From assembly GCA_023515725.1 (NCBI GenBank), contig JALDTO010000200.1, forward strand, positions 62,001 through 126,000: a stretch of DNA of 64,000 nucleotides, given 5' to 3'. A model generated the notes under the pieces. It was not told the DNA's origin. It worked only from the letters and a program-made list of their open reading frames with translations, and ran no database searches. The position numbers and the translations under genes were made by a program. This document shows, in pieces, positions 41,201 to 46,823 of the stretch (within the stretch, counting starts at the first letter, position 1; each line of letters starts with the position of its first letter). The stretch is from Amoeboaphelidium protococcarum X5 (Eukaryota > Fungi > Aphelidiomycota).

Positions 41201-41529
41201 TCAGGGCTTAGAAACACATTGCCCACAGCATACTAGCCTTCAGGTGGTAAATTGACATTGAATTCATTAAAACACTATAAACGAAAGAATCCGTCCGGAA
41301 TACCAGTCATCACGCCAGAACCATCACCGTCCCTATCATCTGCTCCTTCAGCACCACGATGTGTCATGTTACAAAGAATACTGGATGCATCTTGCACCAG
41401 AGAATGAGACTACTGACCCTTAATGTTTACAATAAAGCCAACACCACAAGAATCCTTCTCCAAACTCGGATCATACAATCCTTGCTACGCCGGCATTGAA
41501 TCGGCCCAACCATAATACTTTGACTCCAT
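35232..41529 (-). CDS. GLT1: NADH-dependent glutamate synthase (fused alpha/beta); intron about 38510-38573
   Basis: [99 protein letters not shown](TAA=Q)[14 protein letters not shown]. Confidence 0.98.
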
Positions 41530-41791
41530 AACTTATGCAATTGTATCACTTGTTTTTCTATTTCTTGCAGTGAGTGTAAATAAATATGTAGAATGCCAGA
41601 GTAAAGAATAGAATGAAAACTCAATCTTGACTCTGTATCAGCAAGTATAAATGTATTGAAAGCAGAGAGAGACTTAACAAAGATGGAACAAGTACAGTAA
41701 GTGAGAGACCCTCAGTGATGATGAAATCGATCTGACTGAAAGTGGAAACGGCCGAGATCGATTCAACAAATTTCACACTTTCTTTCTCGCT

Positions 41792-41900
41792 CGCTCTTAC
41801 TGTTGCTCTATTACTGTATTTTTCACAAATTAAGCGAATTAGGGACAGCAACGGATTTTCACCGCCGATCAGCTGTTGCGCGCGTAGCCTGGACTGATCA
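41792..41900 (-). ncRNA. Predicted Fanzor omegaRNA: scaffold running to the element end, plus a guide from flanking DNA
   Basis: Structured segment between the stop codon and the TIR: ACAGC/GCTGT and GGCGG/CCGTT stems around TGAAAAT, with GATCA/TGATC complementarity. Position is typical of TnpB/Fanzor omegaRNAs. The 5' boundary is unknown. Confidence 0.6.
41814..41837 (+). repeat. Terminal inverted repeat at the Fanzor 3' end
   Basis: 20 of 24 positions match the reverse complement of 44572-44594. Preceded by TA. Confidence 0.85.
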
Positions 41901-43988
41901 TTATTGAGGGCGAGGAGGATCGAATCGAAATGGAACCGGCCTTTCACCACCGTCACGAATTCTTGCCAGAAAGATGTCGCGAATGTTTCGTGCCGCATTC
42001 AAATCACGGTGCCAGATAGCTAAGCAATTGTTATTTGGACAATGCTTAATTCTCCATACTCGTGATTGAACAAGCTCACACTCACAATTACTACATCTTT
42101 GACTGGTTCGATACTCAGGGACCAAGCGGACTCTGCAGCGTTTCTTCAGCTCGTAAAACAGCCGCTTGTTAGGAGTCGCAGGATATCCAGGAGAAGCAGT
42201 GTCAAAGTTGCCAGCGTCATATGCTATGATGGTGTTATGGTCAAACTAACCATCTTGGCGGAGAGTTAACATACGCGCCAAATTGTCATAGGCCCTTTGA
42301 CGCTGGAAGAATAGCTTTCTCCTCAGCTTTCAACACATCTCAGGACGGTAGAAGCCAGTGAATGCATCTCTATGTTGCAGTACGTACTGCAAATGTTAGA
42401 TGATTCTCAGAAACGAAGTTGATTTAGCGGAAGGAATGTGGGCCATGGCATTAACGATCTCTGGAGCTCTTTCATTCCATTCAGCCCGCTTCTTTTCACC
42501 GAAATTTTCTCCGTTCTCTTCACGCCATCTGGCAGTCGTGTATACCAACTCATGCTTTCCATTTGCAAACGACGTCTGATCGGTTGGAACATCTGGGATT
42601 CGGTCATCAGGACCACAAGAAGCAGCCAGAAGTATGCCACGATTGACGTCAATTCCGATTACGCGAGTTTCATGGTTTACATCCAGTTCTTGATATCCGG
42701 TACCATCGAAAGCAAACCCGTAGCGGCTAGCAGGAGGAGCACGATACGCAGGCTGTAAAACGGAAGCAGAACATCCAACACCATCGGATGTTATGGAGTA
42801 GCCAAAACGCCTTCTCTGATTACCAGTGGTGGAAACCTTGTTTAATTTGAAACAATGTGACCACAAAGCGTGAGCATTCATCTGACGAACGTCTGGCAGA
42901 TTAGCAGCAACACAAATTTCCTTCAATACATTGGAGGTGATCAGGATGTGCTTCTGCGTAAATCCATTTAAAGGCAATAACGCGTAAACGTTAAGCAGAG
43001 GACCTTCATTGTTCAGCAGATACTCCTCCTCATACATAATATGGTTATTTTCAAATGTACGAAGGATACGCCACATGGATTTCAGATACAGATGCCAGTT
43101 GTTCTGAAGACTAGGCTTGTCCATTGGAAGATTGCAAACGATGTACTAACGTGCGCGCGTCTCGTAATAGTCCAGGTAATATACCACCAATTCTCCGTTA
43201 TCACAATTATTAATGATTTCTGCAGGATAAGGAGGCATTTCTTCACTATCTTCAGGCGGATCTATCAAGGCCAAGACGTAAATAGCAAGAGTATTTACAT
43301 CATCTTCCTCCAAACAGAAGCCGAGATGCTTTCGAAACTTGTGGCGCAGCCATTGTTTCAGCCTTGACGGCAAATTTGTGCTTATATGTCTAGCGCAATC
43401 GTCATTGTGAGCTGAAGCCAAGGTAGTAACCATGTTTGAGTAGCCTCGCATGTCACACCAAAACAAGTCAACGAGACGACGAGAAACATAGTGTGCTTCA
43501 ATATACTCGTTTAAAGCCGCCCAGTTGCAGGTATTACGATTAAGCAGATCACGCCGCCTAGGATTAGCAATCAAAGAGCTGAAGAAGTTACACATCTATC
43601 CATTTGCGCCAAAGCGGATGTCTGGCATTGGAGTGTCAGGATTGTATACCAAATGATTAAGCACGAAGGACAGAAGAAGTCTGCATGCCTCTACTTTTGA
43701 GATCAGTACAACGCGAAACCAAATCGCTGATCTCTTGCTTTACCGCGTCAAGTTTGCAAAATACATTTAAACCGATAGGTACAGCTACTTAGGCTTGGGC
43801 CACAGGTATTCCCATATTGTCTTGTGGTTTGGCAGCATTTCGTGCACGAGGGACATAACTGGGACACAGTTTACTGGATGAGGCTTGTTATCGTCACGAC
43901 CACATTCTTTACAATGTACTTCTCGTTGACATTTACGCGGCGGTAAGACACCACCGATATCTGCTACTTCTATAGGGGGATCTGCCAT
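41898..43988 (-). pseudogene. Fanzor1 RNA-guided endonuclease, about 696 codons, with an in-frame TGA at 42330-42332
   Basis: YALLPLNGFTQKHILI, FGYSITSDGVGCS, RuvC-I VIGIDVN, IIAYDAGNF, RuvC-II VPEYRTSQRCSNC, CPNNNC, RuvC-III WHRDLNAARNI. All lie in one frame bridged by TAR codons. Confidence 0.9.
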
Positions 43989-44571
43989 TTCTGATTTTAT
44001 TGAAGAAAAGAAGTGAAACCTGTCCGATTGTGCTTTTATAGTCAAAAAACCCAACTTAATGATTGACAGAAAATGGCTTGGACGAATCTCAAAATGGAGT
44101 CCCGCTTTGCCAAATCCAATTTTAATCGCCAAGTTCAAGTAGTTACTATAAATAGGAGGAAGCAAGTTAACGTTAAAATCTTGACACAAGATATAGACAG
44201 CCGCTTAAATGAGAAGTGACCAATGCGTCTATGAAACATCTAATGAAGTTAATCATCGGTTGATCAATAAACTATTTATATTTTGATCAAGCGCAATACA
44301 TTTTGTTAAATTTATATTACGCATTATTATACTTCGGCTCACGCTTACATGGTAGTTTTTGGTCGTGCGCAATTATATTAGTACACATCAAGGCTGAATG
44401 TAGAGAGGCGTCATAGTAAAAGAGTCTTCTCATTATGGCCAACCTTCTATTTTGAATTGGGATGCCAACGCAAGTTTAAACATGCTCCTGATTGAAGAGT
44501 AATTTGCAGGGAGTGAGAAACGCCCATAGTGGATTTGTCGCCTTGAAGGCGCGCCTGACCTTTTCTGTGAA

Positions 44572-44594
44572 TCGCTTAAAATGTGAAAATACTG
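44572..44594 (-). repeat. Terminal inverted repeat at the Fanzor 5' end
   Basis: Reads TA|CAGTATTTTCACATTTTAAGCGA on the minus strand. Confidence 0.85.
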
Positions 44595-44940
44595 TAATTA
44601 AGGAAAGGACCGTGGACAGAGCGGATGGATGGTCGGGCGAGGGAACGGGCTGTGGCTGAAACAAGAATGGGCACAGCAGTCTTATTTCAACAACCAAGGG
44701 GCCCGCAATGAGTGTGAGTCATTCTTCATGCGTTCCTTTGATGCATACAGAGAGCTGTGAAGTATTAGCCCAGGGATGAGGATGATTTGTAGCGTTTCAC
44801 GTTGACTTCTTTTTAGGGGGTCGTTCTTCAGATTATTTTTGTATTTGAAATTAAGTACACATTAAAACACGCTCTTATATACACATTGAAAGGCAATAAA
44901 TTTACTTCGAGAAAACTTTATTATCAAAATTTACATGAAA

Positions 44941-46074
44941 TCACTCATTCAGGGCGATTAGAGCCATAAGATATACGCCGCAGCACATTGAGCAGATTTA
45001 AAGCATAAACTCAAATATACTCACGTCTGAAGCCTCCAAAAGTTCGGGAAGTATAGCTACAGTGGCAGTGTAAATCAGTCCACCAGCAGAGAATGGAATT
45101 ACAGACTTTTCAAAGCCTGCTAGGACCGATGCCGCCTACTCTCCCTGAATCCAGATGCCAAACAGAACACCCAACACCGTTCCCATCGCTGACCACATTT
45201 GCATCAACACGGCGACCGGTTTGGAGAATCCACTTTAAATTAAAATTGCATAATCACTCACTTTATGTGGAATCTCGTGCAGAAATATGGCAAACGTTGT
45301 TGAAGCGGCAATACTAGGACTAGCATAATGTGATATAGACAGAGTCAGGCCGTCAGTAAAGGTGTGTGCCAGACTAGATAGTATGGACAGATAACCAGCA
45401 CTAGATTAATGATGATGATGGTGATGTTGGTGTGAAGGGGGTCCATTTAAAGCTTTGTCTTAACTTTACACTGAAGACGTTGACTCAGCCTTACGTTTAC
45501 GTAGCTCTGTCACATTAACCTTGGTAGCTTTCATAGATGAAGTTGACGATTTTTTTTACATATCGGCACTTTGAACAGCAGAATGAAGGTCCTGAGCAGT
45601 GTCTGAAGTAGAATGACTGCTATGATCATCGTGATGATGGTGATGATGATGATGATGACCTCCAGACACTGAGCGTATCAACTTGTCCACAATCATAAAG
45701 CAAATTAATCCAGCCAAAATTGCCAACATAGGCCCAATAGTATGTGCATGATTATGTGAGTGACTTTCCTATTTAGAATCATGATGATGGTTATCAGTAT
45801 GATGATGGTGAGAGCTGTGATCATGATGTCCATGTTCAGAATGCTGTTCCATCACAAACGGTATGACATGTAGGAATATATCTCCAAGTAGAGTTCCAAC
45901 AGCGAATCCAACCAGGATTGTCATTACTAAGTTAGGCAACTTTGCTGGTAGAAGCATCACAAGCAGGAGCGGAACAATGGTGACCAGTCCACAGGCAGCC
46001 AATGCATTATGGGAGGGTGAATTTGCACTCAAAATTTTAACAATCAACTACTACTACTATTGTAAGAAGTCCAT
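44941..46074 (-). CDS. ZIP-family (LIV-1/Yke4-like) zinc transporter
   Basis: FAVGTLLGDIFLHVIP, His-rich loops, AHTFTDGL, LHEIPHKVSDYAILIQSGF, PFSAGGLIYTATV. Ends MALIALNE. Confidence 0.92.
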
Positions 46075-46823
46075 TAAATACTTATAAATAACTATTGGAT
46101 ATAGAATTTAAAATGCTAAGCTGAATTTTTCCAATTAGTTTTGTATTTTAGATGTGAATCCTTTAAAGGACAACAAGTACAAAGTTGCACACGCCAAAAT
46201 CAAAATAACAAACAGCAAAACTAAGTAGCAAAAGGACCAAGTTTTGGTGGCTACAGTACACAACACATTAAAGCCGCGCGAGCGGTGGTGGGAGGCTGCG
46301 ACATGTCTCGAACCGTGTTTAACGCATCTGGTGTAGCACAATGTAATCGTGATCTCTGATTTTTAACTGAACAATGCTCATCGCACTTCGATCAAGTTGT
46401 TTATATATAAAAAAACATTCTATTCGCTGCGTTATAGAATATGATACAACTCGGACTAAAGAGGTTTCAATGGGCAGACACGCAATTTGGGCTTTAAACT
46501 CAAACCGTTTCGGCAATCTCTTACATCACTCGTTTGCCTCGTTATGCGCTGACTCTGAATTGCGATCGTGAATAGACGTCTTTTAAATGCTTTTAGATAG
46601 CACAAGGAAAAAACAAAACTATTATAATTTAAATAAAAAAAATTTTCCTTGATCTCTAGCTAGGAGTGGGAGGAATAACTGGAGGGCTATCCCCGAATGT
46701 ATACCGCGCCGGCGGATGATGAATCTCATTAACAAGATAGAGCACCGCGTTGATTCTTCAGATCAGTTGAGACAATAGTAACATAGTAAAAGTAAAGACG
46801 AGTGAACTATACATACTACTCAA

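Follow-up and report, generated by a model that had tools for sequence, protein, structure and literature searches.

Fanzors are eukaryotic relatives of TnpB that act as omegaRNA-guided DNA endonucleases. Fanzor1 genes carried by TA-flanked mariner-type elements have been known since 2013, and the example to which our locus can best be compared is Spu-1 of Spizellomyces punctatus with its nuclease SpuFz1 (PMC3627910, PMC10432273; PDB 8GKH, 9CEU-9CEZ). The catalytic residues of SpuFz1 include D383 and N385, and the 5' TA of Spu-1 is preceded by a conserved CA, with CATA as the measured TAM (PMC10432273). The Fanzor1 Tc1/mariner elements PUl-1, PUl-4 and PGv-1 are described with shared TIRs, TA duplication, and autonomous as well as non-autonomous members, and swapping of Fanzors between elements has also been described (PMC3627910). 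GtFz1 and PpFz1 (PDB 9CER, 9CF0-9CF3) have the same Fanzor1 fold; an AT-rich TAM is reported for GtFz1, the loci of which are reported to have no clear inverted repeats (PMC10432273). More distantly, TnpB of IS200/IS605 and IS607 and Fanzor2 share the RuvC domain, the C4 zinc finger and a guide RNA at the right end, and the restorative homing that is known for TnpB (PMC13565253) provides a model for what such a nuclease can do for its element.

The window analysed here, a stretch of 64,000 nucleotides from Amoeboaphelidium protococcarum, contains an element of a family that we call family A (Table 1). We think it probable that the locus represents a defunct, non-autonomous cut-and-paste element of the pogo group carrying a Fanzor1, of a family that would be mobilised in trans, would use guided cutting for homing and would be composite in origin. 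Part of this reading is observed directly: the unit has moved to ~12 TA sites, its protein is of the Fanzor1 type, its gene has been under selection, ATTA stands on one side only, the element was assembled from two sources and it is linked to pogo transposases. Like Spu-1 it is a single-ORF, non-autonomous TIR element with a TA duplication and ~80 nt from stop codon to right end; it also shares with Spu-1 a conserved dinucleotide upstream of the 5' TA and the presence of many copies, some broken by retroelements. The two differ in the predicted TAM (ATTA as opposed to CATA), in the left arm, which here comes from another Fanzor, and in having a candidate transposase, when none has been found for Spu-1.

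Table 1. Coordinates of the family A element and its parts, numbered along the window
Feature	Position	Strand	Basis or remark
Complete element (non-autonomous, with TIRs; family A, short subfamily A1), 2,781 bp	41814..44594	-	Similarity of other copies stops there; homoeolog empty
Left TIR, 23 nt	44572..44594	-	First bases differ among copies (CAG, ATG, TTG)
Right TIR, 24 nt	41814..41837	-	Same final CAG in 13/13 clear right ends
5' TSD, TA	44595..44596	-	TA before 11/11 clear left ends
3' TSD, TA	41812..41813	-	TA after 13/13 clear right ends
ATTA upstream motif, predicted TAM, TSD included	44595..44598	-	Function inferred from Spu-1 (PMC10432273)
Left arm: inverted, decayed family B 3' end (RuvC-III codons, B guide-RNA region, TIR)	44437..44594	+	
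5' non-coding region, presumed promoter and leader	43989..44436	-	Subfamilies ~90% identical here
Fanzor1 gene, 696 codons (2,091 nt), pseudogene in window copy	41898..43988	-	
Out-of-frame stretch, codons 36-98, 1-nt deletion to 1-nt insertion	43695..43883	-	
RuvC-I, D447-V-N449 (D-P-N in SpuFz1)	42642..42650	-	
Premature TGA, codon 553; CGA in most copies	42330..42332	-	Database protein P0001 stops at residue 552
RuvC-II glutamate E625, Fanzor-type position six residues ahead of zinc finger	42114..42116	-	
C4 zinc finger, C632, C635, C650, C655	42024..42095	-	PF07282, E=2.7e-10
RuvC-III aspartate D662	42003..42005	-	
Predicted omegaRNA scaffold, three stems, last pairs TIR end	41812..41900	-	
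Predicted guide, ~15 nt of flank, different at each insertion	41797..41811	-	By analogy with SpuFz1 (PMC10432273)

The gene has to be read with the genetic code of its host, in which TAA and TAG stand for glutamine and TGA is the sole stop. This reassignment is published for A. protococcarum (PMC5304391), and it agrees with the dozens of long host frames that read through TAA and TAG and with one Fanzor codon that is TAG in subfamily A1, to which the window copy belongs, and CAA in subfamily A2. An earlier note on this DNA had recognised the code correctly, but its suggestion that the code hides the family from standard-code searches is not supported, since NCBI nr already contains the proteins with the right translation, labelled as hypothetical.

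The ends of the element are established by its other copies. The TIRs are imperfect (20 of 24 positions alike, with one gap), each abuts TA, and because of the one-base gap they were missed by the automated repeat search. The genome search returned ten family A matches of 2.4-2.8 kb at 92-96% identity, the window copy included, and the total comes to ~12 insertions when split and partial copies are added. The other copies end at the same bases as the window copy and the reversed-pattern controls gave 0, which bears out the inverted repeats of 23-24 bp beside TA that the earlier note had put forward as boundaries, along with its expectation of further copies with the same ends. Dispersed TIR insertions that duplicate TA are a mark of the Tc1/mariner-pogo superfamily, and the copies and their ends support the proposed placement of the element there as a non-autonomous member. 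Subfamily A1 is ~2.78 kb long and includes the window copy; A2 is ~3.35 kb long with copies 98.5-99% identical to each other, and three A2 insertions have identical flanks in a second assembly. Two copies are interrupted, one at L042:3062-7616 by an insertion of ~4.5 kb with a long ORF that resembles a copia-type polyprotein, and one at C146:655003-663835 by an insertion of ~8.8 kb.

Sites without the element were found as well. At the homoeologous locus, L031, both flanks are present and the element is absent, and in the comparison between samples, which used contigs and not reads, two contigs of a second sample or other strain join the element's flanks directly. The coverage of the element in the best-matching sample is many times deeper than that of the flanks. 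The homoeolog has diverged (~87-92%) and is without the 6 bases at the insertion site, so that the palindrome ATTAAT, which is a correct reconstruction of the window site, is not found there as a real empty allele. Neither ATTA nor the exact target is present at L031, and this loss may reflect divergence or a repair scar. For two A2 copies intact empty targets were sought, and the search gave one match with 3 mismatches for one of them and none for the other. The element lies downstream of a gene (window 44944-46377) whose product, a His-rich membrane protein, looks like a ZIP transporter, and ~285 bp upstream (window 41529-41813) of a gene that looks like glutamate synthase.

Pattern searches also turned up a few loose ends. 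A 660-bp element at C205:742106-742765 has matching ends that are intermediate between the Fanzor and pogo TIRs and could be a MITE or a ghost locus. Lone TIR-like ends occur at C235:328840 and C214:670526, with no partner seen in these searches. At L034:4061-4102, where a host gene ends, a right-end fragment stands on its own, the sequence upstream in it having diverged; it may be a solo guide-RNA remnant.

The identity of the protein rests on motifs, profile and fold together. With TAR read as Gln, the frame 43988-41898 contains IGIDVN, VPEYRTS, CxxC..CxxxxC and RDLNAARNI, and its last piece matches PF07282. Whole-protein searches used database proteins, while the window frame was searched in pieces. 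Single-sequence searches of the PDB gave no significant match, and only the profile and the fold succeeded: a profile of 31 sequences found SpuFz1 at 1.6e-32, GtFz1 at 6e-20 and Fanzor2 at 2e-8, with TnpB also far behind. Using the structure model of database protein P0069, an intact copy (pLDDT 90.8), the top seven matches of the fold search are SpuFz, PpFz and GtFz entries at TM 0.53-0.64 with SpuFz1 first, and Cas12, TnpB and Fanzor2 follow at TM about 0.3 or lower. The extended REC/WED architecture is, by profile and fold search, nearer to Fanzor1 than to TnpB, Fanzor2 or Cas12. In the alignment D447, N449, E625 and D662 fall on the SpuFz1 metal ligands D383, N385, E541 and D606, and the Fanzor1 motif D-X(125-275)-[TS][TS]xx-C4 zinc finger-X(5-50)-RD is present as D447, TS628-629, C632-C655 and RD661-662, complete in intact copies and interrupted by TGA in the window copy. 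On this sequence and model evidence we conclude that the family A protein is a Fanzor1, with the predicted Fanzor1 fold and the D-x-N/E/D catalytic set, as the earlier note had proposed.

The likeness to the characterized nucleases is one of fold rather than sequence. SpuFz1 is ~15% identical in the structure alignment, and the family A protein differs from it in its 696 aa, in an N-terminal CxxC..H..C knuckle and in having DVN for DPN. GtFz1 and PpFz1 align at TM 0.53-0.60 with 12-13% identity, and unlike the GtFz1 loci the family A element has clear inverted repeats. For TnpB and Fanzor2 the matches are far weaker (TM by query 0.21-0.23), and family A has TIRs and a TSD with no HUH or serine transposase. 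A stop-free stretch taken from an intact copy matched 68 relatives, and the best of these outside the species is 40% identical. RuvC-I reads DVN in family A as opposed to DPG or DPN in all aligned relatives, so that the D and N are kept and the proline is not.

Although the RuvC motifs and zinc finger of the proposed single minus-strand frame are there, the frame itself is broken, and the window does not hold a full-length intact nuclease. The TGA at codon 553 falls between RuvC-I and RuvC-II and removes RuvC-II and RuvC-III. Compared with intact copies, one base has been lost after 43883 and one gained in the A-run 43698-43695. This compensated pair of frameshifts destroys the N-terminal CxxC..H..C knuckle and also breaks up the first strand and helix that are conserved. 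The contigs of other copies have the alternative state at 43882 and 43695. It could be argued that the breaks are assembly errors and the gene is in fact intact, given that one indel sits in a homopolymer run and that contigs rather than reads were compared. We consider this highly improbable, as the same TGA is found at a second locus (L004), CGA to TGA is a common mutation, lesions occur in all five A1 copies examined and the private changes in four of them are near neutrality. The window copy is therefore unable to make the nuclease, but it may still give a guide to protein made by A2.

The two subfamilies differ in this respect. All five A1 copies examined are damaged by stops, frameshifts or D447E, while uninterrupted frames of 696 codons that keep every catalytic residue are found in four A2 copies of this genome and in a further one of the second assembly; KAI3652982.1 is an example of an intact A2 protein. 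The differences between A1 and A2 are mostly silent (pN/pS 0.14) and pairs of A2 copies have dN/dS of 0.15-0.30, compared with 0.6-0.87 for pairs among the A1 copies of the window, L002 and L003. The gene was under purifying selection during the spread of the family; A1 decayed afterwards and A2 is intact. Purifying selection is no proof of catalysis, and a Fanzor that binds DNA by its guide but no longer cuts, in a repressor-like or helper role, would explain the replacement of the conserved RuvC-I proline by valine and the D447E of one otherwise open copy. The guide of the window copy would match DNA ~270 bp upstream of what we take to be the glutamate synthase gene. We find this very improbable, since D447, N449, E625 and D662 are intact in 9/10 copies checked and correspond to the four residues that bind metal in SpuFz1, and since the absence of the insertion from the homoeolog and the other strain makes host domestication at the site unlikely. 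A cutting nuclease remains our preferred reading.

The left arm of the element has a different origin from the rest. The first ~160 bp of A1 are 79% identical to the reversed 3' end of a second Fanzor family, family B, and in A2, where the arm is 496 bp long, the identity is 85% and the arm translates to B residues 609-754 with frameshifts (tblastn E=4e-50); A1 is without ~570 bp of the left-arm region. Both ends of the element are consequently Fanzor right ends. The family B Fanzor is an open protein of 759 aa with DPG/E/RD motifs, 24% identical to that of family A over the RuvC region, and is encoded at L033:3864-6245 and L047-L049 (C207:293363-303090), in near-identical tandem segments, with another copy where C249 begins (L032). 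No relic of an original family A left end was seen at the junction, and no transposase remnant or old left-end TIR was found in the 5' region. We infer that the simplest origin is an A element in or beside an oppositely oriented B element, moved between the two right ends. An A1 copy at L004:4256-5756 (C211) lies ~130 bp from a truncated family B remnant, and on C205 there is a comparable B remnant without an adjacent A copy.

Whether the arm still does more than provide an end is a separate matter. It contains the whole B guide-RNA region in outward orientation, an open B gene with its catalytic motifs exists, and parts of the terminal stems still pair in A2, which would suit an element with two guides in which the left arm makes a family B omegaRNA directed into the left flank, for B protein in trans, and the empty site is guarded by two nucleases, one on each side. 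But relative to B the arm is conserved at only 73-75% in its RNA region (bases 36-90) against 77-90% in its defunct coding portion, and we detected no selection on the left-arm RNA. The right ends of family B fold well (z -3.0 and -3.8), whereas the A left arms stay at chance level (z +0.1 to -1.5). In most copies the terminal pairing is broken, and the right flanks of family A show only TA and a weak A. Such a double guide is very improbable, and most likely the B-derived arm is kept only as a transposase-binding end.

Family B also leads to a candidate for the transposase. At ~0.9 kb upstream of family B stands a pogo-type DD35D gene with DDE_1 and HTH_Tnp_Tc5 domains (PF03184 and PF03221), of which there is one open copy of 447 aa in a rearranged tandem array, and the right TIR of family B shares 21/24 bases with the family A TIR. 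In 4/5 contigs of relatives a similar transposase (one of them partial), 33-46% identical to that of the aphelid, is found just upstream of the Fanzor; the fifth contig is virus-like. At the loci read no left end of family B turned up, and so only adjacency ties the transposase to the TIRs. For the cognate DDE transposase that the earlier note proposed to look for there is thus a candidate, with a similar TIR on one side. From these sequence associations it is likely that the pogo DD35D transposase upstream of B moves family A in trans, and the family B and DD35D locus is a candidate autonomous pogo-Fanzor element. This would narrow the carrier to the pogo-type DD35D group, unlike the transposases of PUl-1, PUl-4 and PGv-1. 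A second pogo family, family P (L043-L046), has at least 4 TA-flanked copies of 2.0 kb with perfect 24-bp TIRs, one of them at C200:126495-128497, just past the end of the window. As a mobiliser of family A it is less likely, its TIR being 16/24 alike and its transposase 23-27% identical to the Fanzor-linked ones.

The flanks of the insertions may point to a role for the nuclease in addition to that of the transposase. ATTA is found at the end of 10/11 left flanks (background 0.107, p=2e-9) and TAAT at the start of 1/13 right flanks (left versus right, Fisher p=9e-5), and beyond TA and the weak A the right flanks have no further motif. This rules out a palindromic ATTAAT as the target of the family, even though it is the sequence of the window site. 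By analogy with the upstream CA and the TAM CATA of Spu-1, ATTA is the predicted TAM of family A. The transposase alone could in principle give a one-sided motif if its preference were orientation-specific and the two ends unlike, in which case the Fanzor TAM would be different or the Fanzor would not act on empty sites. The two ends do differ in origin, and both B right ends are followed by TAA, which is TTA in the left-end orientation, so that some of the bias may be carried along by that end. Yet these two B flanks read CTTA and not ATTA, the pogo family without a Fanzor prefers A at -4 symmetrically on both sides (7/8 ends), and the similar upstream dinucleotide of Spu-1 proved to be part of its TAM (PMC10432273). 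We regard an origin of ATTA from the transposase alone as unlikely and continue with ATTA as the predicted TAM.

The guide RNA is predicted at the other end. The 84 nt past the stop codon are predicted to form three stems, of which the final one pairs the TIR end, as in reported Fanzor1 guides, and this structure fits 12 copies with 95% of cells paired. The fold is no better than that of shuffled sequences (z=-1.05), and no compensatory changes were seen among the copies, which are too alike to give covariation. Rfam gave no match other than a sub-threshold one to a snoRNA, which we take as chance.

Putting these pieces together, the model that we favor would run as follows. A pogo DD35D transposase acting in trans, most likely the B-linked one, would mobilise family A. 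Transcription through the right end would yield an omegaRNA of ~88 nt with ~15 nt of flank as guide, and the complex would recognise 5'-ATTA together with a guide match, a junction that exists only once the element has left. The vacated site would then be cut and, by analogy with TnpB, repair from the sister chromatid would restore the element, so that the Fanzor of family A may serve restorative homing. The composite would have arisen when a family A Fanzor and a B 3' fragment stood back to back and the transposase moved both between two right ends.

With this family Fanzor1 gains a so far unnamed clade, whose intact copies have spread recently and whose predicted TAM, ATTA, can be tested; the window copy itself is non-functional. 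Five separate contigs link the clade to transposases of the pogo-type DD35D group, whereas for Spu-1, the model element, no transposase is known. A single genome offers a candidate transposase together with intact as well as dead copies and with homoeologous sites that are empty, and with these resources the role of Fanzors in cut-and-paste transposons becomes testable. The left arm also shows a Fanzor right end put to use as a left end, a route for Fanzor exchange between elements. As for novelty, the proteins are already public as hypothetical ones; the linkage to pogo and the build from two right ends were not found described. The literature search for Fanzor with pogo gave no such description, although elements labelled Mariner in Repbase may include them, and among titles and abstracts no composite with two right ends was described. 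A search for Fanzor with Amoeboaphelidium found no main text; the Saito supplement includes two proteins of A. occidentale and may also include entries for A. protococcarum.

Further observations concern Fanzors beyond the family A copies described above. A family A relative at L067:5600-8064 lies in a 95-kb virus-like metagenome contig with D5-type primase genes nearby, and is preceded by what appears by eye to be a short remnant of a Tc1-type transposase. The database protein P0071 (MIR68_008181), annotated at 724 aa, joins the N-terminal part of a family A Fanzor to a GYF domain and could be an artefact of the gene model or a real fusion. Finally, PF07282 has 40 matches genome-wide, and as more than 20 of these fall outside family A, they point to several additional Fanzor families in this genome, frequently on paired contigs.
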